64,000 bases of DNA from Oikopleura dioica (GCA_907165135.1 OU015566.1:2418001-2482000), one strand, 5' to 3'; shown: positions 1 through 57,905, counted from the stretch's first letter. Made by a program: numbers and translations. Notes: a model not told the origin generated them from the sequence alone.

Positions 1-3000
1 CTGATACCATTCCTGGTCTGGGGTCCGAACAATCAGCTTCAAGGCTTACGAGAAGCAGTTTACATCGCCAAAGCACTAAACCGTTCACTCGCTGCGCCAA
101 TATTCTACCCAAACTGGAATCAATGGGACAAATTGCCAACTATTCTGAACGCTTCTATGCGTCTCGACGTAGAAAGTCTTTCGAGAGTCGTCTCCTTAAT
201 TGATCCGGCAGAAGTTTCAACTCTTTGCGATGGAAAAATCGATGCGGTTTTTTTCACAAGGAGGGTCCTGAAAACGTTTAAGGGGGTAGAAACAGCTTTC
301 TTGATTTTGAACTCTAGCTACATAAAAGAAAACATCCGGTTTATTTATGTTAACAGAAGTTCCTCATAAATGACCTAAAAGAGGGGTCCAGCCAGGGTTC
401 CAATTTTGCCAAAAAATTTTTGGAGTGGAGTGAAGCGATGAGTTGATAGCCCAAAAAATTTTTTGAGCGGAGTGGATGCCCAAAAATTGGTTGAGCGAGT
501 GGAGAGGGTGAGCGGAGTGGATTCTGAGTGCATTTCGAGCGAAGTTTGAGCGATTAAAATTTTTTTTTTTGCATTACATGCACCCTACGCAGAATGCACA
601 TAAAAAAGAGTCACGGTGCCGGATTCTCTTAGAACGATTTCATTCTCGTATTAATAGTGAATTCACAGTATTATTCTACTTATGATAGAGAAAAACCGAA
701 AATTGGAAAAGAAAGCTGATGAATTGCAGATATGATTTGCAAAAAGAAACTTGTAAAAATCTTTATACCAAAAAATAACTGTGAGCGCGTGAAGTTGAGC
801 TCGGCGCTGCTTCCAGGGGTCCCTTAAAGAAAAGAGGTTGAAAAAGGTCGGGCCCCCACGAGCAGATAGAAACCCAAGTCATCTTTGCACGCCGTGAGCA
901 AGCCTTTCCTTGCTCTTTCTGAAGGATAAGGAAGGGTTTTAACGAAAAGCAGGGTTTTGATTTGAGGGTGTAGCTAATGATAAACTGCTAATCTGCCAGA
1001 AACGTGCTGTTGGAACTTCTTGGCAGCAATATTCTCTATAATAGATCAATTTGATGACTGCGTGAGCCTGAGATTTTCAATTCTAAAACTGACGAACATT
1101 CAGGTAGCCAATCAAAGCTTGATTAAAAAAGGCCCAAGATACAAAAATCCACTCCATCCACTCAAAATCCACTCCGGAGTGGATTTTAAACATTGTTGGA
1201 GTGGAGTGGAGCGAATGAAAGGATGCTAAAAATTAAGGCTGTGGAGTGGATCCACTCCGCTCAAAATCCACTCCATCGCTCAGCAAAATTGGAACCCTGG
1301 GTTCAGCTTCACAAAAATGTGAATGAAAATTGTTTTCTTATTATTTGACTCGAGATATCGAGGTTGAAAATGTGCGAAAATCGAGAATTTCGGAAAGATG
1401 GGTTGCTTCTGAGCCCCATTTCTCGAAAATTTGATTATTAAGGACCCCCCGTCAGCTTTTTTTGAAAAATCGAATTTCGGAATTTTTGAATTTTGCCCCC
1501 GGAAATGGATTCAACGGGCCAAAAAACGATTTTGACGCTTCATTTTTTGGGGGTCTATCTCGACTCTAACACCCTCAAAATCGCATTTGAAAATAAGCTT
1601 TTCACCGAAAATTGACGAATTTGCCCTTATTTTGGCAACAATATTGATTTTTCTTGGTCAAATCTTCGTCTTATCAAGTTTTTGAAGCAAGTTTAACTTA
1701 AGGACACATAAAAAACCAAAAATATGGTGTTTTTTAAAATTTCGATTTTTCGTAGGATAAAGCTGACGGGGGGTCCTTAAAACAAATTTCGAGGGAGATG
1801 TTCCTAGATCTAAGATGTTTCTATCTTAAAATGAAAAGAAAAATTGAAAATCTAAGATTTTTTTGTTTGTAGCGCCAGTTAAAAATCGCTTATTTTCGAA
1901 AAAGCTGTTTCTACCCCTGAAATAATTCAAAAGATAATTCGAGATATTTAAGAGATGGCAATTAAGAATTTCTCTAAGATTCTTGATTTTTGCCATTCAT
2001 TTTTACTTTTTTTGGGAGGGGTCATGATATTTTGCAATTCAGAACTCTATTTCAAGAAACGAAGGAGATAACAAAGAAACAATAGCCATGGAGTATTATG
2101 GTCTGAAGTACGCGGAAGATCGTATCTATAAAGATCGTTATCCAAGAGAAATGCCGTTTCGAGATGCAATCAACCGCACCAAAGTTGCTGAGTACTATTC
2201 TTCTGATGTCAAATGCGCTCAATTACAATTTCCCTGGAGCACGATCCTTGATGAAGAAATTTCGAAGCAAACTCATCTCAAGAGCAGACAAAGAAGTGAC
2301 GAGTTCAAGGAAATGATAGAAATAATTAAACATACAAGGAGACCAGTGTTTATCAGAGAAGCGGCGAAAAAATTTCTGAAAATAAATGGAATTGAAAAAA
2401 TTGCCGTGATGCATTGGCGATATGATGATGTAAGAAAACTGTAAAATTGGGGCGCACTGGTTATGTCGCCGAATGTCGCCGAATGTCGCCGAATGTCGCT
2501 GAATGTCGCCGAATGTCGCCGAATGTCGCCGAATGTCGCCACTTATTTTCGAAAAAATAGGAATTATGAAAGAAAAATTGTTTTTTTGGCTCAAATATAC
2601 AAAACAAACTTGTTCTAGAACCGTAAAAGGCGGAAATAGTAGGAGGCGCGGCAATAGAAGCGTGTCCAGCCCGACCAGTGAGTTTCCTACCACAAATTGC
2701 GCGGAGCGCTTTCTTGTCTCGAAATTATGCCAAAACAGTTCTAGAACAAGTTTGTTTTGAAATTTCTTGGTTAAAAACCAGTTTTCTTTCCAAAAATCCT
2801 GGTTTTAAAAAATAGGTGGCGACATTCGGCGACATTCGGCGACATTCGGCGACATTCGGCGACATTCGGCGACATAACCAGTGTCGACCGTAAAAATTTC
2901 CAGAAAGTGTAATTTAACACGTTCAGAACGACTATATTCACAATAAAAATTGGCGAAGGCAAATGGCGGAGGATTTTATAATGGAGATAAGGGTTCGAAA

Positions 3001-3552
3001 TCACCAGGACCAATACGCCTAAATACCTTTTTTTCTTGAGACGAGTTTATTTTGTCGAGAGAATTTTGAGCCCTGATTGAGATGAAGCATGAAGAAAAGT
3101 ATCAAAAAATTCAGCAAAGAGTTATCAAAAACACTTAAATCAAAGAACCTAACAACAATCTACTTCGCCAGTCCTCCGGACGAAAAACCTCTTTTGGAAA
3201 CAATTGAGAAAGGATTAGATGGACAGAAAGTCGTAAGCGATCAACTTCTTGTAGAATTTTTGCGGAAAGAGTTCGAAAATTGCATTGAAATTATGGAAGA
3301 CTTCGGAGATATGATCTCGCTAATGGAACAAGAGCTTTGTTATCTGTCAACGCTTTTTGTTTATTCTTGTTTTAGCACGTGGAGGTACTAATGTGATTAT
3401 CTAAGATCTTACCTTATTATTTGTTTTTTAGCGCGAATGTTCTACTTGAAAGACAAATTGACGGTTTCTTCGAAAACGAGACGAATGTCAAACTTATTGC
3501 AAGTGCTATTGGGAAAGAATACACTGGCCTTTGCTTTCCTGATAATCCATAA
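1..3552 (+). CDS. GDP-fucose protein O-fucosyltransferase family (O-FucT) gene, 5'-truncated, multi-exon
   Basis: Frame 1 from base 1 reads WGPNNQLQGLREAVYIAKALNRSLAAP (family N-terminal motif). Later exons give AVMHWRYDD, IYFASP and SLMEQELCYLSTLFVYSCFSTW|SANVLLER. Predicted exons: <1-264, 2043-2429, 2927-2985, 3088-3384, 3432-3552 (TAA). The 2986-3087 junction is ambiguous. Confidence 0.85.
393..1299. mobile_element. hAT-type non-autonomous element nested in the 282-1917 element
   Basis: TIR CAGGGTTCCAATTTTGC (393-409) / GCAAAATTGGAACCCTG (1283-1299). 8-bp TSD GGTCCAGC / GGTTCAGC (one mismatch). Subterminal GGAGTGGA/TCCACTCC repeats on both arms. Confidence 0.85.
1442..1776. mobile_element. 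335-bp Kolobok-type MITE
   Basis: Perfect 18-bp TIR GGACCCCCCGTCAGCTTT / AAAGCTGACGGGGGGTCC with TTAA on both sides (1438-1441, 1777-1780). Confidence 0.9.
2455..2883. mobile_element. CACTG-terminated foldback element with 10-bp subterminal arrays, in O-FucT intron 2
   Basis: Termini CACTGGTTATGTCGCC / GGCGACATAACCAGTG. Tandem GAATGTCGCC units on the left arm and GGCGACATTC units on the right. No clean TSD. Confidence 0.8.
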
Positions 3553-3590
3553 AAATAAAAAAGTTTTGTTTAAATTGACAATTTGAGTTG

Positions 3591-3986
3591 CAGTTATTTT
3601 CCTCTTCTGTGGACATATTTTGTCCCAGATTTTTATAAAAATGTCCACAAAAGTGGGCGAGAGTCTTCAAAAATGTCCTGCGGTAGGGCCCTAAAATTTT
3701 TTCCTCGATAAGTTTATCTTCGAAAAATGGCAGATTTCATCACCAAAACGCCTTTTTAGCCTGTTTAACCATTTATGGACCATAAATTATGGTCAATTAA
3801 ACTGTATAATCCATTGATTTCTTAGAGATAAACATCCTCATTTTGAAAAAAACACCCACTTTCTTCCTCTTAAATTTTCTCGGCTGGACAAAAGGGGAAT
3901 TATATCATTGCATAAGTGTCCCTCGAAAACCTCTTATAATGAAGAAAATGTCCACAAATAATGGTCCACAAAAGAGGAAAAAACTG
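3591..3986. mobile_element. Probable MITE
   Basis: Imperfect inverted ends CAGTTATTTTCCTCTTCTGTGGAC / GTCCACAAAAGAGGAAAAAACTG with internal AAAATGTCC motifs. No TSD found. Confidence 0.55.
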
Positions 3987-5246
3987 AGCTAGCAAAAATT
4001 TTTTGACTTGTTTTCATGGGTGGTGGAGCCGGTTAGGGTTGTGCATTTGATGACATTTTGCTAGGTCTCTCTATTTTTAGTTCCTTTGATCGAGTTCTTT
4101 TGCTTGAGATCGAAGACCTCAATTGATGCTTGGCTGTTGTATAAGTCACTGCAGATCTGCGTCAAATTATCAGCTTGCTGATTTCGCCGGACTTCGAGGA
4201 AGCGAATCTCGCCATTTTCGCATAGCTTGTTGATCTCATCACCGGCCGTTCCAACATCGGTGTATTTTGCTGGTGGCAAAGCTGATATTCTTGAAGTGCT
4301 ATAAACAAACAAGTTCGTAAACATCTTTGATATTATCTAAATGCCAATAGACATGCGCGTTAATAAAATACAATTGAAGAGAAAATGTTTTTTGGTGTTA
4401 TTATTATTCATGAAACAAGAGGATTCGCTTATACTTTATTTCTAAGAGTTAATGAAGTTGTTCTCAATTAGAAGTCCTGACTTCACGCCACCGTCCGAAT
4501 ATTATTTAGTCATATTTTCGATCGACCCAGCTAAAAATATCATTGTGAAAGAACTTGAGCGCAAAATACCATAGCTATTTCGACAAAACCAGAACTTAGT
4601 TAAAGAGCTCAGTTAACCCATCTTCCTCCGTGTGTCTTCACTAAGGACGCGAAAGCCTCTTCTTTAGGCATCAAAATTATGATTGTAAGGTGAGCAATAA
4701 ATTCTCAGATATGGTGGAAATCGAAGTTGTCTTTCAGACACAAGTGCGTGATTACCTTGATTGAATTTATACCTTTTCAGTGCTATTCAGAGACAGTTGG
4801 ACTGCTTGCTGAGACTTTAGAATAGAGCAAGCCAAAAATAGAGTTAGAACATAAACGATCTATGACTAAAAGGCGTATTAGGTACGAAATTTAAGGGTGG
4901 CATTTCGAGTTAAAAATACTGATGCCAAATAATTCGATCTTCTGTGAAAATTTTCTTATTTTATCTGATACAGCGGTCATTTTTCAGAAATTTTCGAGAT
5001 TTTTTTTGGATGTTTGCTTGAGACAAAAAATTCGACAAGAGAATAATTTCAAAAAGAGACGTTCATTTGACCAAATGTCTGCTTAAATTCTTCATATTCG
5101 TTGATACGCTAAGCGCGATGGGCTCATGGCTTATTAGAATCAACGCGACGAGAATGGGTTAAAATATTTTCGTTGAAGAACTTGAGCGCTAATGAGCAGA
5201 GTTGCTTTGACGTGTCCAAAGTCAAATCGAAAAGCATTTTTAAAAA

Positions 5247-8200
5247 ATGTCTTTCTTTCGGAACATTTCATATTTCTATCCTTTTTCAATATTGATTATG
5301 TTTTTCACTTCATTTTTAATTAAACTTGAGCGTGACTATGAATTTCTATATCTAAGAGAGGATAAAATCAGAAAGATTCATGATGAAAAGAAGCTTAAGT
5401 TTTACGTCGATCACGGGACATTTGATCCAGCAATTACAAAAACAACACCCTATGAGATCATTTCTTCACCGAATGAGGACTTAGAAGACATCGACATTAT
5501 GTTTGGTTTAAAAACTGTTTTAAAGAATCGTAATATAAGGGAAAAAATTCGGAAGTCCTTTGGCAATCCCGAATTATACCGAGAAAAATACAAAGTAAAA
5601 TTTGTATTTCTACTCGGTAAAAAGGATGATTACGACGAAAATCTTATTCTCGACGAGAAAAATCTTTACGACGACATTCTGTATGGAAGCTTCCAAGATT
5701 CCTACTGGAACTTGACGTACAAGGAAATCATGTTCTACACTTGGACGGAGCAAAAGGCGCCAAATGTCAAATTCGTCTATCGAGGCGACGATGACAATTT
5801 TTTGAACCCGCTTGGATTGATGAAGTTTTTTGACGAGCACTGGAGCCAAGCAAATGCAGAACCAGCCTTGTGGGGTGGAATAATAAAGGAAAACAATTCG
5901 TTGCTTGGCCAAGGAATGAAAGTGGAAGAAATAAGAAAAGAGAGAAAAGCTGATGTGTGAGTCAAAAGCGAATCAACATTAGATTTTAATCAAGAGTCTT
6001 TCTTGTTTTAGTGTTGTTCTTCCGCAATTTATCAATTCGGGCTATTTTCAGGTGGCCAGGGTTGAAATTTCCCCCTTATCCTGCTGGTTCGGGCCAAATC
6101 ATCAATCGAAACGCTTTATTCGTTCTTGGAAGCCAGATGCAGCGCACTCCAATAACTTCTGTTGATGATGCCTTTGTTGGAATTTGCATGCTGTACGCTG
6201 GCTTCGAACAGGGGTGACCATTTGGCATTGGGCATTTGGGCAAATCGGGCAATTTTCGGGCAAAAACGCTTTTGGGCGGGCAATTGGTCGACTCAACGCC
6301 TGAAAATAGGCTGGGCAACATGGGATACGTCGGGCATTTGGGCATTTTCTGGGCAGTTGGGCACCATTGGGCAGCTGGGCAAATGCCCACCGGGGAAAAT
6401 CACGAACGTGGGCTTTTTCCTGCCCGCTTATTGGTCTTTAAGCTCGCAAAGAAAAAAAAGATATAAGGAGAAGGTTCTGCAAGGGTGTGTGAAGTGGACC
6501 TCAATGGTTAGCTGTCTACCTTTGACCTCCTGATCCTTTTATGAAATTATCCACCCCGTTAACTCGATTTTTTTGCGGAGATGGTTCTGCAAGGGTCTGT
6601 GAAGTGCACCTTGAAGGTTAGCTGTATACGGTAGACTCCACCCTTGACCTCCAGATCCTTTTTATCCCTTATTTTTGAACCCCTTGTTCGAGACGGTTAT
6701 GCAAGAGTGTGTGAAGTGGACCTTTATGGTTAGCTGTCTATTCTTGACAACCGGACGGAACTTTTACATAATTATTTTTTCGACCCCTTTTAAATATTTT
6801 TCAAACCTTTCAAGAGCCTTTTTTTGCTTAAAATTCGTTCAATCACTTCAACTGAAACAAATTATTAAAAGAAAAGTAAAAAAGTAAAGTTTTAAGAAGC
6901 CTGAAATGCCGGGAAAATTTTTGCCCGAAAAATTGCCCAATCGCCCGATTGGGCATTCTGGGCACATTGGACTGGTCGGGCATTTGGTCGGCCCGGGTCT
7001 TGATTTTTGGTATTGGGCGGGCAATTGGTCGGCCCGACGATAATTTTTTGCCTAAATGGTCACCCCTGGCTTCGAACATAGGCTCTTCGATTACGAGGGA
7101 TTCATGTATCCGGGATTGCTTGAAGATAATAAAATTTGCTCTGTGGTTAAATCTTTAAGCATCCATTATCCGAAGTTTGATTATGAGTGCATGGTTAATA
7201 AAATCAATGTTTATGCTGAAAGATGTGATCGTGAAGGTAGGTTAGACATTTCTGCTTCTTGCAATTGGTACGACATGAGTTTTTCCCCGCCGAATATCGA
7301 CGGACCAATGTTTCAACGTTGCGGGGCGCAATTTAACAACAGCAGATGTAGTACCAACAGGCCCTTGGATCGACATTTGGAAACGATTTTTAATGAGTTC
7401 ATATATTTTTTTAAAGAGTCGAGCGGGTAGGAGTTAAGCTCACGCCTTTTTCGATTTTGCTTGAGACAATAATCAAAATATTTGTCTATTAAAAGAGTAT
7501 AAAAGAAAAAAAATCTTATTCCGAATAGAGAGCCAAGAGAAGAGATGACTGGGCTGTGAAAAAACCTGAAAGTGGACCATGTTGCAGCCCGGAAGGCTAC
7601 TGTGTGCCAACGGAATCGAATTGCTCCTGCGCCGATTGTGTAGATTTTCTTGAACTCGAAAATTGTAAGTAAATTTTAAATTTCCGCTTGTTCTATAAGC
7701 CTTTTCGTAAACTTTTGTTTTTAAATTTTAAGGGAACTCTCCTTAAGTAAAAATTAATCATGAATCATCAATATTTATTTGAAGATAAAAATGCTATTCT
7801 CGATCATGAGATGGGCGTCACCTGCTGTTCATTGGTTCAAGTACATTCGAAAATGCTTTTTAGGTTCAGAGTTAACAGTGAAATGAATATTATATCTCGG
7901 TTGCATGAAAAATAAGTGCAGATTCATTCAAAAATTTTCCACCAAGACCCCTAAAATGATAATCGTAACTCCCATTAGAGGTATTTACAGGAAAATCATC
8001 ATCGATGAAGAAAACGCTGAATACGTCTCTCAAGAAGTTTCGAAAGATAAACCTGTTTTTAAGCTTGTTTATGGGAAAATAAACTCTGAGGAGTCTGGTT
8101 GGCATATTTTGATGGTTCAAAATGACACTTATAACCCATTTTATGCTTTTGGCGAAACAACTAGCAAGAACAACTGCCCAAAAAAGCTGATTGGTTCTGG

Positions 8201-11622: not shown

Positions 11623-11888
11623 TGCTGGATATGTCACGAACGGCCCGAAATTCACGAATGTCACGAATGTTACGAAAATCACGAGACTCATGAATGTCAC
11701 CGAAATCACGAAAGTCACGAAAGTCACGAATGTTACGAATATCACGAAAATCACGAAAGTCACGAATGCACGAATGTCACGAAAATCACGAGATTCATGA
11801 ATGTCACGAAAACAATTTTTTTGTTCGTGACATATTTAGTCAAATCGTGACATTCATGACATTCGTGACATTCGTGACATATTCAGTG
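11623..11888. mobile_element. Foldback element with 10-bp subterminal arrays, related to 2455-2883
   Basis: Left TGCTGGATATGTCACGAA versus right TTCGTGACATATTCAGTG. Inverted arrays of GAATGTCACG / CGTGACATTC. Confidence 0.7.
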
Positions 11889-14800
11889 CCGACCTAAAAA
11901 ACCATAAATTTCGCCCGAAAATTCTTTTGAAATGGGCAGAATCAGAAAAGAGTTTCATCGATTACGTTTACAAAGATTTGCCCTCATCCAATTACCCCTT
12001 GATCAGCGACTTTTTGGCTTGTTATTTCATTATTTTGTTTAAAATCTCGCATTACGACTTCCGCATTCTAATTGCTCTCCCCACCCTTGCGCAGGTATAT
12101 TTTACGTTAATTTCTCGTTTCCAAAGGAAACGCGCAAAATCAAAAATAAACGGCCCGTTACCATATTACAAACAGAAAATGCCTCGTTTTCAAGAATTAT
12201 CGCGCTTTCGCTTTTGAACAAGTTTGTGGAAATGAAAATAAATCCAGACTCGAAATGGATTATTTTCGTTGTGAATGGGGGCGATCGACGGGAAAGAGCT
12301 TGTTAATTTGGATTTTAAATTTGCTTAATTGGCAATCAAAGGAGGTTTTTTCTGACTCATTTTTTGAGGATTTCCAATTTAAATTCTTTTCAAGTTCAAA
12401 TTTTTATTAAAAAAAATCGAGAAATCAGTTTGTAAAAAGTCGATTTTCTTAAAGAAATCGGCCTTTTTCTCGCTTTATTTTTAATAATTCGAACCCTTAG
12501 GTTCCTCTCAAGTGTTCATTTCGTCTTTTTTTCGAACGAAGCCCGGCTCCCGGATCTCAATTAAGGCCCTCTTATCAGATAACCCGCCGCGCGTGCATTT
12601 GACCCCTCGAATCCAGTTGAAAATTCTCGAGTGTCATTTTTGGTGTCTCATTTGCGCGCCAAATTGCTTCTCAATCACCAACTCGCGCGCAACTTACGAC
12701 AGCGCTAGAAATGTGCTTTACGAGATCATTTGCAGACAGTGAAAACACTAGAACATGCAGAAAACACGTGGCGCGGTTTTTAGTCTTTGAGCGATGCATT
12801 TTAATTGATATTTTTGGAATTAGTTTTTGAATTTTGAATTCTGATGTTCTAAAAAAGCGATTAAAAACTGGGTTATTTCCGATTTTCCACCTTTGTAATT
12901 TCGAATTTCAAATTCCGAATTCAATATCAATCAGGATAATCTGCCTGTCAGAAGAGACACCGTGTCAGGCGATAGTCGCGCAACAATGCGCTCCGTAACT
13001 CCTGCCTTCCTTCATGCATACACTGCGATTTCCAGCTGGAAAATTGGCGCCTTTTTCAAATTCTGAAAATAAAGGGACGAAATTTTCGAGAATTCTTTTT
13101 GTTCAAAACAAGCGGAATTTTGAAACAAACTAACACCTTGTATTTTTTCATCAGTAACTTGATCTCTTTAAGACAGGTTCATCTGAACTCCTAGTCATAT
13201 TATACTAATGGTAATTAATTTTGATTGGCACGCCGAGTTTGAAAGTTTTTCGAATTATTTTACGCACAGATTTATCTTTTTTTTTCTCGCCCAAAAGACT
13301 ACTTTGAAACGCTCCCCCGAAAAAACGCAGGAGGGCTATGTTTACGGTCTTACAAATATCAAGGGGCTATTCGCGCGCGTACAGTTGGCCTGATCCGTCG
13401 AGGAAGAATTTCTAATCCCTTCCAGCTTCCATCAAAAAGCCGCGCGGCGCTAAACCCAAAATAACTTTGCCCCGGCCTCCGAGGGCCTCAATTGATCAGC
13501 TGCAACTTTTTACTTACTCAGGGATTATGGACGGCTTTCTCCCGAAAGATCCAGAACGGATAAGCATCTCCGAGAATTTTCAAGTGGAAAAAAGGCTTCG
13601 AGAGTTGAAGTTCTGCTGGTTTGGCGCTGATCCTACTTTTTTGAAATGAACAAAGACCAAGTTCTTTTGCGGAAATTAACGCCGGTTCGTCGGGGGACCG
13701 GGCCGAGTTCGCAGATCGAGGAGGATTTTATCGCAGCTCACGAAAGTAAATTCGCGGAGATACTTATCTCGGAGCCAGTGTTTTGTTGAATAAGAGCCAG
13801 TTTTGTTTTACGAAACTAGCGCAGGATAATAATCCGTTACGTAAAATTAATTGAGCTGAGAAGGCATCATTCTTGACCCTTGGGATTAACCATCACAGGT
13901 AGGTACTCGAGGTACTCGACAATTGCCTGCTTGCTTGTTCTAATTCTTACGATAACGCTCTTATCGATGAAGAGATAAGCCAGTGAGGACTAATTTCCGT
14001 GTCCCCGATTCCTCTTTTCGCCGGGAGGAGGTCAAGATTTGTTAAACACGGTTTTCAAAATCTCACGATTCTCCTCAAATTTTATTCTAAAAGAGACTTT
14101 TTATTTAGAATTTTTTTTACAAATAAAAAATTAAATAAAAAATTTGCTAAAATAATAAAAATACGAAAAACCGCTACAAAATGATGTTTCTTTCAAATGG
14201 ATTCAGCTTTGTCGAATTCCAGATATTCTTAACCTTTACTTCCAGCCGCTTCCTGTTCCTCTTTTTTCGGTTCCAACAAACAAACTGAAATTCCCGTCCT
14301 TGTCACGCGCTGACAGCTCTGGGAATTTGAAAAGTTTCTTTTCAACCCCAAATTTTGGAGTCGCGAAAAGCACATCCGCCCGCGCGGTCCGTCGTTTTTG
14401 AAGTTTTCCAATTTTGGGAAGTCTTCAATCAAGAGGTCATTTTTACAAAATTTGACCCTGTCGCCAAATTTCAAAGTCAAAAAGCTTTCTTTTTTTCAAA
14501 GGAGGGAAAATATGGAAATGAGATAAGCGCTTATCATAATAAAAGTGTCATTTGAATTTCGAATGAGACGAATTAGATCATCTTTTTGTGGCTTTTTTGA
14601 GCGCTAGAATGGCTGGAAAAGACTGTGTGTTTGAACAAGCCGTGGCTACTTCTGCTCACTTCCGGGGGTTTTTCCGGTGAGGGTATTTATCAAGCAGCTG
14701 AGGGAGTAAAATTTTATTCGAGGGAAAATTTTGCCAAGACCCTTTCTTTCATGACTCCTCCTATTCTTCAGTCGAATAAATTTTGTCACGGACCATTCCC

Positions 14801-32100: not shown

Positions 32101-33064
32101 TTATTCGGCATCAAAAATAACAGCATTATCGCAAGTTTCTCTGCGACTGAAGTCTTTCGTTTTGAAAACCTCAAGCTCTGTAGATTTGATTTCATTGTCA
32201 ATTCTCAGCCGAAAGACCTCTTCACGAAGAGCTTCTGATTCTACATTCGCCATTTTCAGTTGCAGCGAAAGATCCTCGATTTTCAAAAGCGAATTTTGCA
32301 GCGTATTTTCAGACAGTTCTTTTTTGTCTCTTTGATGATCCTCGTCATATTCGCAGCAGTCGCAGAGACACTCATGTTTGACATTTTTGAGAATTTCAAT
32401 CTTAGAGCTGAGAATCGTGTTGTTTCGCTTTTCTACTTCGATGATGCTCTTTGATCTTTCAACGGGTCAAATCGAGGATCAAGTCAATTTAACTGACTAA
32501 ATTTGACCATTCCTGATGAGGTCTTCAGTCACTTCTTTGAATCTTTCTTTGTAAAATTTTTCATTTTCTGAACGATCCTGAAGATTATGCAATCTTGATC
32601 TCAATTCTCTGTTTTGATTTTGAGAGCATAAAAGATCTTCTTCAAGTTTTTCCATTCGCTCTTTTTGATCTTGCTCGATGGCGAAATCTTGCTCGGTATC
32701 TTCTCGGTATTTTTGAAACGCTTCTTGTTGGTCTTCAAATTCCGTCTTTAGCCTTTTGATTATTGATAAAAAAGGCAAATTTTAATCAAAATTACTCGTG
32801 AAATTCAGCTCTCAGCCGCTCATATTGAGTCGTTGCGCCCTCGGAGTCTTAAAAATCCTAGTTTCGACTTGATTTTTTGACCTTACCAGAGTAGCTCAAA
32901 TCTGAAAAATATTCCTCGTTGTCTTCAGCCAAAAGTTTTTCCGCATTATTGAGTGCTTTTTTGACCAACTCGTGCTGAATGACCAAATTTGTATATTCAA
33001 TTTGCAATTCTGTCAGTGCATTTTCTGCTTCTATTCTCCTTCTTTTCTCGCTTATCTCGGCCAT
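32101..33064 (-). CDS. Coiled-coil protein of unknown function, multi-exon, 5' end uncertain
   Basis: Heptad-rich E/K/Q exons at ~33064-32885, ~32855-32800, ~32750-32513 and 32455-32101. The last junction needs a GA donor. May join upstream to the 33283-33590 TM exons. Confidence 0.65.
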
Positions 33065-34907: not shown

Positions 34908-36535
34908 TTATGGCGCATACGGTCTGAACCCCCTGGCTAACATTGTCCAAGATTGAACAGCATCGCCAGATTCTTTAGCGAGGAAGAAACTTAGATTATT
35001 TTCGAGGTGAGCGATCCTTAAAAAAATATTTAACTCAAATAACGAAATGAGACTTACTCTTTTTCTGAGCATTCAGCATCACTCACTGCCAGTCTGAACA
35101 TCTCCCTCATCAATTCTGGGTCTGTATACTTGTGAGCAACAGAGAGTCCTCGCAACAGACAAGGATTGTCAACCACAATTCCTTGCGGATTCAGCCCAGA
35201 GCAGATGCCAGCCGACCTCTTCAACTTTTCCCTGAAAACATCGAAAGAAAGAACAAATACTGTAACTCACTGTTTTCCCGCATTTTGAATCAAATCTCCG
35301 ACGTAAACATCATCCATCGGAAGCACTTGAGTCCTTTCAATCGCATTTTCCATCGCTAAAGCGAGATTTCGCGTTGTTACGTAAGCAGCGCCAGAGAAAT
35401 AAGAACTGAACTCGTCAGCATCGTACATTTGCTCCGGCATGAAATATTTTGAAGAAGTATCGCGAATCGGAAGGGCGCCTTTTTTTAGACAACCTATTCC
35501 TTCAACGGAGCGTTGAGAGCTTCTGATCGCAGCGATTTCGCGAGCGAAATTTTGGGGGACTTTTTTGGATTGAGAAATTGAAGAATATGAAGCGGACATG
35601 GTTACGCGACGGCTTCGCTCTCTAAATTCTTTCTCATTTTCAACCCTTTTTAAAAGAATATCATCATCGCCTTTGAACACATAATCCACATTCTTACACG
35701 ACTTCTCAATAAACCTCAAGAACGCAATGTCCTTGAATGGCAAATTATAAAGCGACTCTTGAAAATCCAACAGCAAAATATCTCCCTTCTCTAGAATTTC
35801 ATCCGACAAATCAACCTCTTCTTCTGCTTGGGCGATGAGGAAAACCACCTTGATTCTGTAATGCAGCCAGTTCCATATTTCTGGTTGGAGCCAGGTATCG
35901 CGAAGAGCTTGACGCATTTGAGAGGATCTTGGCAGCGATTTTATTCCGAAAATTATCGTTTCGTCTTCGCAAGGGAGTGGAGAGATGAGAGCTTCTGGTT
36001 GTCGATCGGGGTCGAATTTGAACAGTTTGTTCAAATGAGAGAACATCCCTGTATAAACGCAATTTCGTTCATTATTCAATCTCCTCTGTCCCCTCAAATC
36101 CGGATAAAGACTTTCAACTTCCGAGACATTCAGCGTATTCTCTTTGTCCCAACCATCGCAATTTCTCCTGTACATCACCCAAGAATTAAACTCCGCCGAA
36201 ACAACATCTGGGCCCTTCCGGAGCTCGAAAAATCCCAGCTCATTTTCGATGACTTCCGAGACTCCGTTGCACTCGTCTTTTTCAGCGCAAGCGAGTTTTG
36301 CTGATTCAAGAGACGAAAAACGGAAACATTCGATCGTTACCGGATCTTTGATGCAGTTCTAGATACTGTTAGAAAAAAGCTTTTTCTCAAAAGAACTTAC
36401 TGATATCGTCACTCCTTCGTGAAAAACCCAAAACTGTAATTCGTTGCTCCCGTCTTGTTCGTCCGGGGATGTGACATACAGTAGTAGCAGCAAATACAGA
36501 CAGTAATTCAATCTCTTTGTCAATAAAGCCTCCAT
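34908..36535 (-). CDS. Second GT31 beta-1,3-glycosyltransferase with a Cys-containing stem module
   Basis: N-terminal TM (YCLYLLLLLYV). Stem FSSLESAKLACAEKDECNGV...FELRKG. Catalytic motifs IKSLPRSSQMRQALRDTW, DILLLDFQESLYNLPFK, FKGDDDILL, YFSGAAY and MDDVYVG. Confidence 0.85.
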
Positions 36536-45761: not shown

Positions 45762-47982
45762 ATGTTAAAAGATTTTTTCTTCAGTTTTTCTCTTTTTGCA
45801 ACATTTTTCTTTCCACTTTTATGGGTGGCCTTGAAATCAAACAGAGAAACCTTTACCTCAGCGAAAATTGAAGACATAGAAGACATAGAAGAACTACCTC
45901 CTGCAAAGAATATTCTGCTCTTGACTGGTTATCGAACTGGATCGTCCTTTTTGGCGGAGATTTTTAACCACAACGAAAACATTTTTTATGAACGGTTTCT
46001 TTTCTATGATTTTTATTCGAAAGCAGCGATAACGTAGTTCACAATCGAAATTAACAGCCCAAGTACACCTGCAATGAAGGTGATCCACACTCGTTTCTCC
46101 ATCTTTTCGAGAACTTCTTCCGTCTCCAACCCGTCTTTTTCGTCTTCTTGTTTTTCGACAATGAGTACAATGTCGATGAAACCGTAGACAACTTGGAGCA
46201 CGATGCTCAAAGCTGCCAAGGACATTTTCAAAAGCATTGGGTAGTCCTCGCAGTAGTACACAGTTCTTTCTGAAATTATAAATTAGACCAATTAACGAGT
46301 GTCTTTTCCCCTGACTTACGTTGACTTGCCAAAGTAGCTCGACATTCTTCACCGGACAGATCATGGTCACAGATTCGCCCGCAGAATGTGTACTTCTCGA
46401 TTTCATTCCTGAATTAATCCCCTGAAATATGATTCGATATTGATGAAACATACTTGAGCATGATGAAATTTCCAACAACGAGGGCTGAATTCAAAGCAGC
46501 AGTGTTGAAAGCATTCATTTTTCTTGCTGTTTTTTGGCTTTCCTCGCTGAAAATTTAGATATTTATCGAAAAAAAATCATAAATTTATCAATTAAATTAT
46601 AACTTTTTTAACCATCATCTTCGTTTTCGTACCTCTCATCGTCCTTTGTAGCCTCAGTTTGAGCAACAGAAGGAGTAGGTTGTTGAATCTCCTTCCCGGG
46701 ATTAATACTCTTTGCTCTTTTTGTTACTGCCATTCTGAGCGAAAATTTTCTCTAGCCCGGGCTCACGATCGGTCACTTTTACTTATGATTCATAAGTTAT
46801 GAACCTTATGTTAAAGGATCATCCGCAGTCGTAAATTCCGCGAAAGCCGTCTTTCACATAGACTCATTGTTGGATACTTTATTACGGAAGTAAAATGGAA
46901 ACTTAGCAGCCATATAGCTTTATTGGTAATTGCGCCGTTTATTTACAGTAGATTTCAGTTTAAAGAAAATTTTTCTAAAAAAAAGAAACCGAGTTTGAAG
47001 CTTTTTGAGCCTGATCATATTGTTTTGGGGACAAGAAAGTATCGTGAAAAACGACATGAAGAAGAATGGGCTTCTTTCATTTTGGATCTTTTTCGGTGTA
47101 ATTTAACCGACCCAGGATTAAGATATGATGATGGTCGGATAGGAATGGAATCGATTCTCAGAGAAACAAGGGTTAGGGTTAAGGAAGCTTTTCTTAACCC
47201 GTTACCGCGCGGGAGGCGTAAAAATGCCTTCTCGCCAATAAGTACGCAGTATTTCGAGCCTCGGGGCGTGTCGAAGCCGCGAAATTTCTACGCGCTCGGC
47301 AACGGGTTAACCCGTTTTTGTATCTGATTTTTTGGTCCCTTTTGAAAGTCTTCTACGATAAACCAAATGCGCTCAAATCAAGCGATCTGAAAGAAAAATC
47401 ATCTGAAGAGGCCCTGACGAAATTCTGCCAGAAAAACGTGCGAGTGATAAAAACCATTCAAGATGGCGACATTGGAGTGATTTTACGAGAAGCAGAGAGG
47501 CGTGAAGTGGATTTGAGGGTCATTCTCTACTTCCGGTAACGATTTGTTAAATAAGCAGTTTGCAGATTATTATTTTTAGCGATCCAAGGCCCGTTTATTT
47601 GAGCCGGTTGAGGATTGCCGCCGCGGCGTCTCTTTTCTACAACATCAAAATTTTTTGTGAACGTAAACTCGAGCAGTTAGAATTTCTGAAAGAAAATACT
47701 CATCTTCATTCAAGGCTGAAAATCGTCAAATTTGAAGATTTTGCGATGAAGCCAAAACAACAGACAAAAGCGATCTACGATTTTTTGAAGCTAGAATTTC
47801 CGATTTCCGTTGAAAAGTGGCTGGTAGAGCATACGACTCAATCGGATGAAGATACTTTTGGGACATCGAGAAACTCGGCTGAAATTATTTCGAAATGGAA
47901 AAGTGAAATAACGCAGGAGCAGAAAATTCCGATTGATTTTATCTGTGCGGATTATTTAACTGAGCTCAAATACGACATCTGA
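45762..47982 (+). CDS. Carbohydrate sulfotransferase (Gal/GlcNAc-6-O-sulfotransferase-like), type II membrane protein
   Basis: N-terminal TM. 5'-PSB motif LLTGYRTGSSFLAEIF, then NIFY|LFEP, VIKTI, 3'-PB motif FR|DPRPVYLSR, VKFEDF and SRNSAEIISKWK. Exons: 45762-45989, 47001-~47170, 47350-47536, 47580-47982. Confidence 0.9.
46013..46733 (-). CDS. NINJ: Ninjurin-like two-TM protein nested antisense in sulfotransferase intron 1
   Basis: Four phase-compatible GT-AG exons: 46733-46633, 46546-46454, 46408-46320, 46269-46013. ALVVGNFIMLK resembles the ninjurin ALLMANASQLK helix. LSIVLQVVYG and LLISIVNYVIAAFE resemble the two ninjurin TM segments. Confidence 0.75.
47198..47306. mobile_element. 109-bp piggyBac-type MITE
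   Basis: TTAA|CCCGTTACCGCGCG ... CGCGCTCGGCAACGGG|TTAA. CCC/GGG termini with TTAA duplication. Confidence 0.85.
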
Positions 47983-48881: not shown

Positions 48882-49012
48882 AACTAGTTGATAAATATGA
48901 GCGAAGGGGGCTCTAAGAAATTAATAGTTTTATGAATGGCATCTAAAATGGTTAAAGTTGAATTTTTGGTCAATTTTGGAAGTTTTGATGCCCTTTAGTT
49001 TTCTGTGTCGCT

Positions 49013-51075: not shown

Positions 51076-52059
51076 CGTTCTGTTCGTGGATGTCGTTGTT
51101 CATAAACTGTTCAATATGAGGAGAACGAGACGCTCAGGAAGCTTTTATGGGCTTGGTCGAAAAAGGTGGCACTCTTGGATACGGCGTCCCTACAGCACCT
51201 CGGAACGCGCCACGGCAGCATTTTTCTGATCTGCCTGAGCAATTAAGTATAATCATCGCTGATAACTATCGATGGAAAAAGTGAACTCTATCTTTTGATA
51301 TTTCTGGCGGAGAACAAAGATTTTTGTAATAAGCGTTAGAAATGTTAAAAATTGATCTGATCGAACACATGTGAACATGGTTTATCATACCATATTTAAG
51401 ATAAGTATCAGATATACTAAACTTTCCGAATATTATTATTAAAGTTACTTACTTGTAACTAATGATATTTTGAATGTTATTACAATATTTATAAGAGATG
51501 CGGTAAAAAGATTTTATTTTCGACAAATCTATAAATACGACTCATATATTCAATTTTGATTATGAATCAGAAACAATATCGTCGGACATTTTTTTTGAGA
51601 ATTCTATACCAAGCGTCATTTAGTTCTTGATAACAATTTTCTTTTTTTAAAACGATGAATGTGTCCCATAAAGAACAGATCTGCCATGACGACATGAATT
51701 ATACCTTTCATTGGGTTTACAATGTAAACTTTACATTCTACACTTTACAAGAAAGTATTTTCCATTATTTTTTATCACCGAAGAATATGAACAATAGCAT
51801 TTTATTCATAGGCCTTTCAATCGTGTATAAGCAAAGTTGGGTTGTCGTTCGGAGATACCGAAGTTTAGTTCCGCATAAAAATAAGACACTTTGTCTATCT
51901 GAATTGAATCAGTACTCTGAGTCAAGAATGAATTGTTGGTGGCGATCATAACTGGACGTTTTCGTCTGACGTATCTTCTTACGTATTTTTCTTACGTTTT
52001 ACTGTACGTATTTTCAACAAGCCCATTCGTAATTTTCAGCACCTCGATCAGACGTGTCA

Positions 52060-52710
52060 GAAATGATTCTTCTTGACCTATGGATGGAAAGAGACCTAGT
52101 CGTAAATAGACGGGAGAGGAAGTTCTTTTTGAATTGACGATGAAATTGGATATTTTTGAATAAAAAATAATCTTCTTGAGCAGTCAGCCTTGACGACCAA
52201 TTCTCTTAGGGGCACCGGCGAACGAGGATCATAATTAATTTAATTGAAGGCGATAATTTATCGCCACAGGATAGACTGCTGGATGCTCCGGACTCATTCC
52301 AAAAGAGCAACCCTCATTATTTTCTTCAGCATGAGATTCTTCTTCTACGATTGGATCAACTCTTGTGACATCGCTAAATGTCAAGGGCGGATAGACTCGT
52401 CCAACTTGTCGCTAACGGGATTAGGTAACCGATGACTATATTTTTAACGAAAGGATAAGATTCTGAGACCTTTTCGATGATGGAAAATGAACTTTGTAAT
52501 TCAAAAAGTGATGGATCATTTCATCCCAAATGGCGCCTTGGAAATCATTTGATCTTATTTCTTCAGAAATATAATTTTGCCTGGCCAGACTCAGTACGAC
52601 TCATCAAAGAACTTTGAATATAGTGTTCGCCTAGGACCCCGAATGAAGTGCTGAAATGGGAAGTCTGTGCCGACTCGGTTCAATAACGCTACGAAGACGC
52701 CTCAAAGTAA
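52060..52710 (+). pseudogene. Possible decayed gene
   Basis: Protein-like blocks (RIIINLIEGDNLSPQDRLLDAPDSFQKSNPHYFLQHEILLLRLDQLL, KYNFAWPDSVRLIKEL) bounded by splice-like sites but broken by TGA, TAA and TAG stops. Confidence 0.3.
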
Positions 52711-53547
52711 TCAAGAAATAGGAAGAAAACAATAAAATACTTTTTGATCAGTAGATCAATGATGCTTACGAATGGGCTCAAATAAAACTAATCGCAAGTT
52801 TTTTTATTTTCGCCGTCGTTTCTGATGCTTTATGCATTTGTTAGAAGAAGAATATGGTTCTTTACTACTATTTTGTATATGACGATTTATGAATGAGTAT
52901 TCAACCGTTTTGAGTTCAGCACTACTTATACACGAGTAGTCTGAACTTTGTCGACTTTCGAAATGCACACTGGTCTCTTTTGCAAATATTTGTTCTTTCA
53001 CTTTCCTTCAAAGAAATCAGATTTCAATGAATCCACTCAATCTTAGTCTCATTATGATTATTCTTTGAATTTTGGATTTTCATTTTTCTATTATTTTATC
53101 ATATATAATTCGAAAAGATATACGACGAATATTTGAATGTATAATCGAATCATCTTTTATATAAAAATATGATGAAGTAATTGATATTAACCTTTTTGTC
53201 AGGGTAAATAACTTCCTCTGAGAAATTTTTCAAAATAAAAAATAATCTTTATGGTCCCGGAATCTGAGGAAAAATTATCCAAAATAAGCCCAAATGGTTT
53301 TTTTCTGACCCAATAATGTCCTTTTTCTCTTTCTGTACTGTCTGAAAACTCAAAAAATATCAAGTCAAAACTGGCAAGTAATCTACTGCAGCTGGATCTT
53401 CTTGACTCATTTCGTGCCTTCCGCATTTCTGCGAATTGCTTGCTCTGGGCTTATCTCGACCTCACTAACTGACTCTTCCAACAAACTCAAATTCCATTTC
53501 AAACTACGATTAGACGCAAGCAAAGTCAGAAAAATAACTTTTTGTAA

Positions 53548-54650
53548 ATGTCAAGAGAGCCACAAAGATGCACAACAACTTTCAGCGGATTGAAATATCT
53601 CGGATCGGTCGAAATTCTCCAGAGTTTAGTGAGGGTTTCGAATCAATTGAGGAGCGATATATGTAGCTATGCAGTGAACAAGATTCTTCAACGATACAAT
53701 CGATCAAACTTCTGGCAGAATCATACGGACACGCAAGTTTCGCAAGTAGAAAACTTTGTTGGAAGATCTCCCATAAACCCTTGGCTCCAGCAAATTTGTG
53801 ATATCCACGTAAGTAAAAAGGAGTTTTTTAATTAATTAACATGGGCAAGAAACCTCCAAGAAAACCGATTTTTGGGGACTTATCCGATTTTGGCCCAATC
53901 CAATTTCTCTAAAAAATCTTGCAGTGGAATCAAGGAAGACCTTCAACTAACTCTCTTCTTCAGATTTCGCCTGACAGAATAATCGTCAATGCGAATGACG
54001 GAAGATTCGTCACTAGAATATTTGAACACCCACTCGTCAACACCTCCATCGCTGCGAGGGATATTGGGGATCCAAATTTATGGTTCTACGTTTTTAAAAC
54101 TATAGACGCTGGCGACCGAATTCCAAAGCGGCATTTATATCTATTCGAATGCACAGATTTTCTTCAAGCTTCGAAGCTTCACAATGTCAGCATTGATCGT
54201 TTCACTCGCCCTCCCCGACCTCCTGGAACTTCCTTTCATCCACTTTCAAAAAACCTTTCCCACTCACAGTCCAAATCGCCTCAAAATTCTCAAAGCCCCT
54301 CGATGGGAAATAGTTATTCAAGGTTCACTTGACAGATCTGATTATCGTTTAAATTATTGCCTGTACATACCTTTTCAATACATCAATTCATGCAAACGAA
54401 CTTGCCTAATATTCCCGTCACTCATCTGGCAGCTACATATCTATCACCGAGACCAGAGAAAACCATTTATTTCGGCTCTACTAGCTTGAAACACGCCTTT
54501 AATACATCGCTAGTCAGCCGATTAGCCGACAAGAGTAAGCCGACTCGTTTTTTTGATGTGGCGCTGAAAAGAATAAGTTCAGTTTCAATTCTCAACAACG
54601 AGCAAATCATACAAGAACAAACTGTTTTTTCTGATCAACAAAGTTGCTGA
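53548..54650 (+). CDS. Shc-like PTB-domain protein
   Basis: KYLGSVEILQSL...AVNKIL matches the Shc PTB YLGxVEVLQSM motif. The second exon has LQISPDRIIV, LWFYVFK and HLYLFEC. The 3' exon structure is uncertain. Confidence 0.65.
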
Positions 54651-54735
54651 AGAGAAGACTAGAATCAATCAAAAATATTATGAGAATATATTTTCTGGTG
54701 AGTTAGGGTTAGACTTATAAATGAGCAGTAGCACG

Positions 54736-55106
54736 ATGAAAGAAAATATTTTTATATTAATTTAATTTTTTTAATTTTAAAAAAGTCCAAGATCCTTATT
54801 TCTTCCCTGATCATCACCAGCGAAGCGCAAAACGGCGGATTTTCTGTGAGCAATGAAGCCAGAGTCATTTACAATTACGGTATTCCAGAAGTTTTTACTC
54901 ATTCCTTTAACTTTTTTGAAGCAAAATCGCATCAAGAATTCTGTGGATTGGCGCACTGTCGCGACTGCTTGACATTGCTGCGAAAGGAGAGCCAAATCTA
55001 TGGATCTGAAGCGTTGCAACGGCAAGGCTACTGGACTTGCACTGTCATCTGGCTCTGGAACGACTGCTGCCCGAAATGGGCCGAGACTGTAGTTCAAATG
55101 CTCTGA
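54736..55106 (+). CDS. Second member of the FC-x4-C-x2-C...C-x8-CCP small secreted family
   Basis: FCGLAHCRDC-x23-C-x8-CCP at 54939-55073. A signal-like KILISSLIITSEA lies upstream in another frame, so the junction is unresolved (intron or frameshift). Confidence 0.55.
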
Positions 55107-55779
55107 TACATTCTTTTTCAATTATCTTAAAGTTTGATTCGTCGTGTTTTTATTTACTGGGAGTAGTTTCGAATAAAGATTTCCGCAATGTAAAATTCTA
55201 AAAAGTATCATTTGATTGATTACCAATTAAATATCCATATCTTCAAATGTAGATATTGCCGGCAGAATATTTTGAATCTTCGGAAATGAAATTCTGTATA
55301 TGAGAATCCAAGTTTTCAAGACAAATTGTCGTATAGATAGAGACGAACCGTCAGTAAGACTTCGATATGAGAATGATAAAATGAATTGAATTATTTTAAA
55401 CATGTGTGTCCATTCTTATTAAGTGCCGGTTCAAAAGCAATTAAAAAAGTTCAGAAGTAAAAGAAGAAAGGACGAATTAACAGATGTTGAACTATTTATG
55501 TACAATTATAGACCCACTTACTCACTTGTGGGAAGTAGCTTGGCCGCACAGTGACTGCGAAGTTTAAGAGGTTTAAATCCAGTGTTTACTGCTCCGCCAT
55601 AAATGTAGCAGCTAGGAGGAGGCAGCAACTGACTTTCCTTTGAAACGATCTAGGAGTTTTTAGCTCTCATTCAGCTTTAGCTTTATCCAGGTAAAACAGA
55701 GAGATAAATTCATACCTTACTTTGATCAAAATTTTCTAGGTTTTTTTGTTCCCGAACGTAAAACCACCAAACCAGCAAG

Positions 55780-56727
55780 ATGGAGTCAATCAAGCACAAG
55801 ATGGACACCATGGTCAAGGAGAAGGAGGCCGCCACCGAGAAGGCCAACTCTCTCGAGGCCGAGGCCCAGGAGTACGAGAAGACCGCCGCCAAGTTCGAGA
55901 AGGAGGTCTCCGAAATCCAGCGAAAGATCGCCAAGGTCGAAGATGACCTCGATATCACCATCTCTGTCACTAAGGACACTGCTGAGAAGCTCGAACTCGC
56001 TGATAAGGTCAGTAAAAGTCGAATACTGTAAAGAAAACTAAAACTTCTTTCAGGAAGCCGTCGATGCTGAATTGCAGGCTGGTGCCCTCAAGCGACGACT
56101 TGCCCTCCTTGAAGAAGAAACTATGCGAAACAAGGAGCGACTCCAGGAGAACATCGAGAAGTGCAAATCCATCGAGGCTTCTGGCCAGGAGAACGAAGAC
56201 GCCCGAAAGGCCGGTGAAGCTCGATCCTTCGCCGCTGAAGAGTCTCTCGAACAGATGGAGACCCAGCTCGAGGAGGCCAACGAGGTCGCCAAGATCTCCA
56301 ACCAGAAGTTCGAAGATGCTTCCCGAAAGCTCAAGGTCGTTGAGGGCGATTTGGAGCGAGTTATTGAGCGAGCTGAAGAATTCGAGACCAAGGGTAAGCT
56401 TTTTTTGTTTATTCCGATTTCAATCTCTCTTTTCTAGCCCGAGAACTCGAGACCCAGATCCGAGAAATGGAAGCTAAGGTCAAGGAGACCGAAGCTATCA
56501 CCATCAAGAACGGTGAGGAAGAAGAGAAGTTCGAGAACAAGATCGCCCACCTCCAGGAAGAATTCAAGTCCCAGGATACCCGAGCTGAATTCGCCGAGCG
56601 ATCCGTCGACAAGCTCGAGTCCTCCATCGACGGTCTTCTCGAGTCCCTCATGAACGAGAAGCTCAACTACCGATCAATCTCTGAGAAGCTCGACAAGACC
56701 CTCAACGACATGATGTCCATGTCTTAA
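55780..56727 (+). CDS. TPM: Tropomyosin (285 aa)
   Basis: Exons 55780-56007, 56054-56393 and 56438-56727 total 858 nt. MESIKHKM start, LKRRLALLEEE, RKLKVVEGDLER, RAEFAERSVDKLE and LDKTLNDM. Confidence 0.95.
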
Positions 56728-56934
56728 ATCACCAAAAAAACCTTTTCTTTTTAAAGCTGAGCTGAATCCGCCTAGAAATAGGTGCTCCAATGTCTGTTTG
56801 TTAACGTGATCGGCTGATCAGGCTGAGAATATCTTTTTCTGACTGGAAATAAATCTCGAGTCATTTCAATTTCTTCTGTTTAGTTAATTATTATTAAATA
56901 AGTATCAGTGTAAAAAAGAGGGAAGAAAATGTGA

Positions 56935-57905
56935 TTATGCGGAGCGACGAGATTTTTTCTTAACAAGTTTAGCTCGCAACGAGTCGGAGCAGAGTTGAAA
57001 AGCCGTTTTTTCTTCTGAAAAGAAAAAGGTTAAAAAATATTTGAGGGCTTCATAAAACCCTATCTCAGGCCTATATGTTCCCATGCCCATTACCTGTATT
57101 AGTGATGGTTGGATCAGCCCCAATTTCAAGCAGAAAAAACGCGGTTGAAAGGCGATCTTCTTCACAAGCCATGTGTAGAGGAGTATTGCCAAGGTTGTCT
57201 CGAACATCTATCATCGGATTGTACTAGATCAAGCTGTCAGATTCTGCAAAAAGAAAGAGAGACTTACCTGTATCATCATTTCTATAACCTTATCGTATCC
57301 TTTTGAAGCGGCTCTGTGAAGTGGAGAATGACCGTATTTATCTTGAGCATCGGGCTCTGCTCCACGGGAAAGCAGCATTGGAAGAATATCTGAAGGATAG
57401 ATTCAGAGAAATTGAAGATAGCAAGTACAGTCTTACGAGTGTGGTTTTTGCTGGCAACATAGTGGAGCGGGACTTGGCAGTTGACTGTTCTCGCATTTAC
57501 TAGAACCAGAATTGATTAAATAGTTTCAATAAAGAGGCTTACCTCCAGACCCGGCTGCAAGTAAAATCTCAGTAATCTCATCCGATCCAGCGGAAACAGC
57601 GCAATGAAGGGGCGTCAAAAAGAAGGGTTGAAAAAACTTTTTAAGATGTGCACTTGTCACTTCTTTCTTTGCTCAACCCTGCCCCAGCCCATGTCATCTT
57701 TGACGTTCACTTTGGCGTTGAATTTCGCGATGAGGAGCTTTGCTATGTCGACGTTATTCGTGCAGGATGCCCAGTGAAGTGCTGTTCGGCCGCCGTTGTC
57801 TTGTTTGTCGACTAGATTTGGCTCTTCTTCTAGTCTGGTGTTGAGCAGCGGCTCGTGGCCTCCATAAGCGAGATTACAGAGCTCCAAATTCGACACTTGA
57901 GACAT
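56935..57905 (-). CDS. PSMD10: Gankyrin, 26S proteasome assembly chaperone (ankyrin repeats)
   Basis: RTALHWAS, DDMGW|TPLHCAVSAG, PLHYVASKN, GAEPDAQDKYGHSPLHRAASKG, GNTPLHMACEEDR and EEKTAFQL follow the gankyrin repeat order. Confidence 0.92.

Follow-up and report, generated by a model that had tools for sequence, protein, structure and literature searches.

Within a 64,000-nt stretch of the Oikopleura dioica genome from the Okinawa lineage (GCA_907165135.1 OU015566.1:2418001-2482000; hereafter the window), some introns with unconventional splice sites have complementary ends that pair in a short closing helix. The helices are present in the sequence, two of the junctions hold true, two introns keep the helix between lineages, and it is missing from GT-AG introns. 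About 10-12% of O. dioica introns are non-GT, mostly GA-AG, and the U2-type spliceosome, the sole one in this species, handles these introns too (PMC4122922; PMC7072748). Our observation bears on the means by which a conserved U2 spliceosome removes, in Oikopleura and related animals, thousands of introns that do not follow the GT-AG rule. We regard it as an even call whether the stems are inverted-repeat relics of hAT-like insertions, partly retained for helping to splice weak sites. A preliminary description of the window had proposed end-paired introns as a class; all the sequences and stems that it quoted were found where it placed them, and each junction that it proposed leaves an open frame across the join, which by itself is weak evidence.

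The PSMD10 intron and the coiled-coil gene intron

Read and contig evidence for RNA junctions was mapped on positions 54600-60500 of the window only, where near-identical metatranscriptome contigs define the introns. Within this interval lies a short, conserved and well-defined intron of PSMD10 (57616-57683, minus strand; 68 nt, GG..TG), established from an RNA contig and from orthologues. Its 5' arm at 57673-57680 (AGGGTTGA) pairs with a 3' arm at 57624-57631 (TCAACCCT), leaving a lead of 3 nt at the 5' end and a pyrimidine-rich tail of 8 nt at the 3' end. As the preliminary description had proposed, exactly this segment is removed: in a near-identical metatranscriptome contig 57615 is followed directly by 57684, 68 nt being omitted with a slide of 1 nt, so that the 3' end at the joint reads ..TTTTTG|ACG, or ..TTTTT under the slide. 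The same contig also splices out the GT-AG intron 57500-57542, and from another contig of that run the GT-AG intron 57224-57267 is missing. A smaller GT-AG intron embedded in the segment (41 nt, adding nine residues and also in frame) had been named beforehand as the outcome that would speak against the proposal; the contig refutes it, using the GG..TG ends instead of the embedded GT and AG.

Orthologous sequence fixes the position of this junction. A search with PSMD10 exon 1 returned mostly giant ankyrin proteins, with one useful match (P0043). The genomic contig L003, which is diverged (76% protein identity), has no intron at that exact codon and reads ...ATGGGATGG|ACGGCG..., and because exons 1 and 2 are fused there precisely at GW|TALH, the junction is exact. 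Since five DNA runs (four samples, two studies) contain 31-mers that overlap the intron, and since the intron is also found in a lineage about 22% diverged from the window, the RNA skip represents splicing, and the contig is unlikely to stem from an allele free of the insertion. Template switching by reverse transcriptase over the hairpin was likewise rejected, because the joint restores the ankyrin sequence GW|T(P/A)LH seen in the orthologue that has no intron and because a retained intron introduces an in-frame stop codon.

The diverged lineage in question, lineage B, is represented by a genomic contig from the Joint Genome Institute (JGI; L007) with ~78% exon identity to the window. There the PSMD10 intron (L007:5596-5670) occupies the same codon, measures 75 nt and runs GT..TG, beginning with a near-consensus donor, G|GTTAGG, and ending ..CTTCTG|ACC; the intron is thus absent at this exact site from L003 and present in both the window and L007. 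The intron loops cannot be aligned between the two lineages, and both stem arms are kept. In the window the helix runs from A4-U(-9) through A11-U(-16) and in L007 from U3-G(-7) through A12-U(-16), with the CCC at positions -10 to -12 in both. The arms differ by one G-C pair that has become G-U (a C-to-U change opposite G), and one extra G in the G-run is taken up by a 1-nt slip. The persistence of this helix despite diverged loops argues for constraint, and would be consistent with an aid to splicing. With its G(G/T)..TG ends the intron lacks the AG acceptor of the G[A/C/G]-AG class and lies outside the described classes of O. dioica introns (PMC4122922; PMC7072748).

The second conserved example is a GA..AG intron of 57 nt that belongs to a coiled-coil gene (32456-32512, minus strand), defined from sequence and orthology. 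Its 5' arm (32501-32508, GGTCAAAT) pairs with its 3' arm (32465-32472, ATTTGACC) with a lead of 4 and a tail of 9, and the reading frame is open only once the intron is excised. The placement of this intron in the preliminary description is supported by GA..AG introns at the identical site in three lineages: the window, a European Nucleotide Archive metagenome contig (L001:351-407; 84% identity) and the Bergen assembly (L002:513-580; 73% identity). Because the intron measures 57, 57 and 68 nt in these lineages, the frame is preserved only by excision. An end helix of 6-8 bp is found in all three, in differing register (GGTCAAAT/ATTTGACC, AGGGGTC/GACCCCT and AAAGGG/CCCTTT), with empirical p values for the end duplex of 0.032, 0.005 and 0.053. 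The Bergen gene model for this gene (L002:1-508, protein P0002) loses the frame after LEEDLLC, and its prediction around the introns seems faulty.

End pairing across intron classes

Further junctions were obtained without regard to stems from NOL12 and the gene downstream of it. For lineage B, a spliced JGI transcript (L004) was aligned to L007 to fix the introns, which gave ten: seven GT-AG, one GC-AG and two GA-AG. In the window, an RNA contig joins 59556 to 59624, removing a 67-nt GA..AG intron of NOL12 (59557-59623, minus strand) with the structure GAA + TGGTGA / TCACCA + ATAAACAAG, that is, 6 bp with a lead of 3 and a tail of 9. This is the geometry that the preliminary description had put forward, in an intron absent from its list and found without selecting for a stem. 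The second NOL12 intron of this kind (59758-59849, minus strand; 92 nt, GA..AG) was known from that description as a GA-AG intron with its donor at 59849 and its acceptor at 59797. The donor stands, and the acceptor is replaced by 59758, since the RNA contig joint 59757>59850 gives 92 nt and not 53 nt. In its minimum free energy fold it has a weak closing helix, CGGGG/CCCUG, that starts at +4 with a lead of 3 and a tail of 5; its lineage-B orthologue (L007:2665-2870; GC..AG, 206 nt) has GGGAU(U)/(G)AUCCC, also starting at +4, with a lead of 3 and a tail of 7. Between these two orthologues the donor switches GA <-> GC while the non-canonical status is retained.

A third locus, in the gene downstream of NOL12, has a putative 66-nt GA..AG intron (58975-59040, minus strand) whose junction is inferred from its RNA-verified GA-AG orthologue, L007:4060-4305 (protein join NIQ|NSKTPVI). 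Membership of the G[A/C/G]-AG class thus follows from RNA for 59557-59623 and 59758-59849, from three lineages for the coiled-coil gene intron and from orthology for 58975-59040. The controls include two further GT-AG introns of NOL12 and two in the neighbouring plus-strand gene, all removed in RNA contigs.

End-duplex energy was calculated between the first 16 and the last 22 nt of each intron. Its median is -7.5 kcal/mol for the six non-canonical introns not selected for stems, -13.5 for the three introns of the preliminary description and -13.3 for their three orthologues, as compared to -2.2 for 13 RNA-verified and -4.7 for 25 predicted GT-AG introns. The claim that end pairing in non-GT introns exceeds that in GT-AG controls is upheld in this small sample (Mann-Whitney, p = 0.003 for the six unselected introns against the 13 verified ones and p = 0.029 against all 38 GT-AG introns), a comparison that is indicative only, the six being three loci in two lineages with orthologue pairs included. 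Helices were counted as Watson-Crick pairs with a lead of 0-6 and a tail of 3-11. None of the 38 controls has such an end helix of at least 5 bp, which agrees with the earlier observation of no such stem in GT-AG introns of TPM, ARHGDI and KIRREL; none of the 25 predicted ones exceeds 4 bp. Among GA..AG decoy segments drawn from the window, 2.7% have a helix of at least 6 bp and 0.5% one of at least 8 bp. A GG run near the 5' end together with a CC run near the 3' end occurs in 9/12 non-canonical introns vs 1/38 GT-AG introns, and the non-canonical acceptors here are purine-rich or non-AG, without the T-rich tract of GT-AG introns.

The class of non-GT introns with end stems proposed earlier therefore holds for a subset and not as a general rule: two GA-AG orthologue pairs have little or no helix, and the helix is accordingly a trait of a subset rather than a requirement of GA-AG splicing.

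Proposed origin and role of the helices

The window offers a young hAT insertion for comparison (6201-7076, plus strand, in a GT31 coding exon), whose target-site duplication of 8 bp, GCTTCGAA, and terminal repeat of 15 bp, CAGGGGTGACCATTT, are both perfect. The intron arms begin (C/T)A(G/A)GGG(G)T and read CAGGGTTGA or TAGGGGTTGA, against CAGGGGTGACC in this element; AGGGTTGA occurs six times in the window vs 1.8 expected. Inverted repeats forming helices of 5-11 bp terminate the PSMD10 and coiled-coil gene introns, 59557-59623 and the candidate 45990-47000 described below. A transposon origin of the stems is plausible from these likenesses. The earlier suggestion that they are relics of transposon terminal inverted repeats thus gains from the resemblance of the arms to hAT termini and loses from the want of a surviving target-site duplication, so that it stays at the level of inference.

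The reading that we favour, and put at evens, would run as follows. Miniature hAT-like transposons would land in exons and be tolerated as introns, with GA, GG or GC donors (GT in one orthologue) and AG or even TG acceptors, their terminal inverted repeats being left as relics. In the pre-mRNA these repeats would form a closing helix of 5-11 bp around a G-run:C-run core, beginning 0-4 nt inside the 5' splice site and ending 5-9 nt before the 3' splice site, with the interior of the intron looped out and the short 3' tail single-stranded. Surviving helices would owe their retention to bringing a pair of weak splice sites close to each other for the spliceosome. That the arms are conserved where divergence has wiped out the loops favours a function, for which joining weak 5' and 3' sites would be the simplest candidate. 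This reading also draws on the terminal-repeat-bearing, transposon-derived introns reported for the larvacean Fritillaria borealis (PMC11282704) and on the enrichment of non-canonical introns among newly gained introns of O. dioica (PMC4122922). If this is true, a cis-acting end helix conserved between lineages would be a simple contributor to splice-site tolerance, and the "new" non-canonical introns of Oikopleura would, like introns of Fritillaria, dinoflagellates and euglenids, be tied to the insertion of transposons.

Several observations weigh against this account. Comparison by eye of the 8 nt flanking each helix, and of the intron ends with the adjoining exon ends, found no direct repeat above 1-4 nt at the introns; lead and tail sum to 8 in the lineage-B PSMD10 intron (2 + 6) and to 5-17 in the others. 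No other copies of the intron sequences were found in the 64-kb window beyond one 12-mer common to the PSMD10 intron and 35561-35650. The near-fixed offsets that had been proposed dissolve once orthologues are counted, the lead then ranging over 0-4 nt and the tail over 5-13 nt. The 5' splice-site consensus itself includes G at +5/+6, and the C-run occupies the usual place of a pyrimidine tract, so that part of the complementarity could be incidental; the register slip of the coiled-coil gene intron is also expected by chance from G and C runs. The lineage-B orthologue of 59557-59623 (L007:3005-3116; GA..AG) has no helix, and no notable end helix was found in either 58975-59040 (-7.7 kcal/mol) or L007:4060-4305 (-1.8 kcal/mol). 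To these comes the paired and small sample behind the energy comparison.

A stronger form of the functional reading, which we hold to be possible and rather doubtful, would make the terminal helix a structure-dependent splicing rule in O. dioica, by which it sets the borders for the U2 spliceosome on non-GT donors and TG acceptors. A G-run at about +4 to +8 would pair with a C-run at about -8 to -12, and the arrangement would predate the split of the cryptic lineages. Such a rule, if true, would be a chordate counterpart of the code of Euglena nonconventional introns.

Less probable than that, in our view, is that the helices are neutral remnants of the terminal repeats of transposons and have no part in splicing, in introns that are merely younger insertions. 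This would suit the hAT-like look of the arms, the two GA-AG introns with little or no helix, and 59557-59623, whose lineage-B orthologue lacks the helix and is still spliced GA-AG, as well as the three-fold enrichment of non-canonical introns among newly gained O. dioica introns (PMC4122922). Repeats without function should, however, decay together with the loop, whereas the arms of the PSMD10 and coiled-coil gene introns persist between lineages that have ~73-84% nucleotide identity in exons and intron interiors that can no longer be aligned.

We also judge it unlikely, and more so, that two linear signals are at work and no helix: a G-run at +4 to +8 that would aid the 5' site through U1/U6 contacts or as a GGG intronic enhancer, and a C/T tract at -8 to -14 that would serve as the pyrimidine tract, with complementarity between them incidental. 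Every helix does share a core of GG(G) with (C)CC, a G at +5 is frequent in GT-AG donors here as well, the lineage-B PSMD10 donor is near consensus, and the register of the coiled-coil gene helix slips across lineages. Against this, A-U pairs extend the helices well past the G:C core (AGGGTTGA/TCAACCCT, GGTCAAAT/ATTTGACC, CGGTTTCTTTT/AAAAGAAACCG), and the sole arm substitution across lineages, the change from G-C to G-U, keeps the pairing.

That there is no class at all, stem-bearing junctions having been picked by chance from a window rich in short inverted repeats, seems to us a shade less credible again. The window holds ~700 inverted 8-mer pairs 10-150 nt apart, some 1.4-1.8x the number in reverse-only or complement-only controls, the excess for inverted 8-10-mers being modest; a grid of lead by tail over 31,798 G..AG candidates that bridge open reading frames (ORFs) has no peak in any cell; and a Fisher combination of the empirical p values of five of the six unselected introns, calculated by hand, gives ~0.08. 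Scans of the unannotated window speak neither for the class nor against it, and grouping candidates by ORF pairs is far too noisy for defining introns. Such picking would not account for stems at junctions defined independently of them (by RNA contig, intron-less orthologue or a gap in homologues), for helices in orthologues outside the data of the preliminary description, or for their absence from all 38 GT-AG controls.

Very improbable, finally, is a non-spliceosomal, structure-guided removal like that of Euglena nonconventional introns, which are excised as circles: the PSMD10 intron does lack GT (in the Okinawa lineage) and AG, and the geometry resembles N3-CDG...CH'G-N5-6|R (PMC12501133) with a downstream exon that starts with a purine, but there is no CTG at -8 to -6, lead and tail differ, most cases keep a +1 G, a terminal AG and an exon-final AG like ordinary GA-AG introns (PMC7072748), and in Fritillaria borealis the U2 spliceosome is reported necessary for all intron classes (PMC13326754).

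Comparable systems and remaining candidates

None of the papers that we read, which convey the work of Denoeud et al. (2010) and of Henriet et al. (2019) at second hand, mentions pairing between the ends of O. dioica introns. The coiled-coil gene and NOL12 introns, together with the candidate 45990-47000, conform to ordinary O. dioica G[A/C/G]-AG introns in having exon AG | GA(A)...AG (PMC4122922; PMC7072748). The closest comparable system is that of introns derived from miniature inverted-repeat transposable elements (MITEs) in F. borealis, followed by the introners of Amoebophrya and then by Euglena nonconventional introns.

The F. borealis introns are non-canonical and carry terminal repeats, according to the parts of Henriet et al. 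2019 that are conveyed by PMC11282704 and PMC13326754. Like Oikopleura, F. borealis is a larvacean tunicate without a minor spliceosome. The non-GT/AG introns of both have terminal inverted repeats and lineage-specific positions, and for both a transposon origin and a tolerant U2 spliceosome are proposed. F. borealis differs in that most of its introns are of this kind, mainly AG-AC/AG-AT, with target-site duplications and a YAY signature. In Oikopleura, by contrast, they are a minority, with G(A/G/C/T) donors, AG/TG acceptors and no target-site duplication, and at least two of them are old and common to lineages. Recent work on Fritillaria reportedly points to changes in U2AF and in the methylation of small nuclear RNAs.

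Amoebophrya introner elements have inverted repeats of 8-20 nt and direct repeats of 3-5 nt (PMC7789003). As in Oikopleura, they are non-canonical introns in which an end hairpin joins the exon borders; unlike here, they form multi-copy families with direct repeats over the borders, neither of which was seen in the 64-kb window, and the organisms are unrelated. Euglenid introns resemble those of Oikopleura in that their ends pair a few nucleotides inside both borders, and knock-in of artificial introns shows that this pairing is needed in Euglena (PMC12501133). The CAG/CTG motif and 3+5-6 spacing of Euglena do not recur in Oikopleura, and the Oikopleura cases mostly retain G+1 and AG, unlike the Euglena intron, which is excised as a circle. 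In the PSMD10 intron CAG occupies +3 to +5 and CTG is missing from -8 to -6; the coiled-coil gene intron and 45990-47000 have neither. The Euglena purine rule holds for the PSMD10 and coiled-coil gene introns and fails for 45990-47000 and 59557-59623.

The longest stem belongs to a putative GA..AG intron of 1011 nt in a sulfotransferase-like gene (45990-47000, plus strand), where 11-bp arms (45993-46003 / 46981-46991; lead 3, tail 9) would pair across 1 kb. Its putative junction was drawn from the continuity of ...NIFY|LFEPDH, and a rival GT-AG intron (45995-46993) is in frame and adds ERLK. The two exons gave no matches in Pfam, a PDB sequence search returned a single chance match only, a homologue search returned none, and the window has no paralogue with FYLFEP. 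A complete antisense gene lies inside this putative intron (46013-46740, minus strand), its exons being seen as minus-strand ORFs.

Another putative intron, 2986-3087 (plus strand; 102 nt), has 12-bp arms with two G-U pairs, hAT-like ends and a fold z-score of -2.7. Because the downstream exon opens with its own ATG at 3089, this element may lie in a 5' untranslated region and may be merely a MITE there.

Two weaker cases had been listed alongside these. The first, 35561-35650 (minus strand), is a 90-nt insertion (AA..AA) that follows immediately on the DDD motif in a GT31 glycosyltransferase. It corresponds to exactly 30 residues that are gapped in all GT31 homologues aligned, and has the form AAAA + GGGTTGA / TCAATCC + AAAAAA (7 bp including one G-U); being in frame and without a stop, it is a putative intron only. 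The 12-mer at its 5' end, AAGGGTTGAAAA, recurs in reverse complement at the 3' end of the PSMD10 intron. The second, 7380-7528, is withdrawn as a stem case, its end pairing being at chance level (empirical p 0.46).

Two raw RNA runs labelled as the same species (X12 and X13) differ from the window at many fixed positions (55782-56766), their identity to it being only 90-95%; they derive from another cryptic lineage and are of limited value for junction calls here. PSMD10 and most of NOL12 are not covered by them, and an AC..AG joint that they give at 58831-58917 is probably an alignment artefact of lineage divergence.

At 11700-11890 (plus strand), units containing GTCACGAA(A/T) recur and allow numerous alternative GT..TTTAG "introns" whose ends match over 8 bp; a coding region made of tandem repeats is more probable here than a stem. 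In lineage B, one assembled transcript (L004:1-1787 vs L007:1808-5295) spans NOL12 and two downstream genes with all introns removed, and resembles a polycistronic RNA of the operon type, unless it was assembled over overlapping transcripts.

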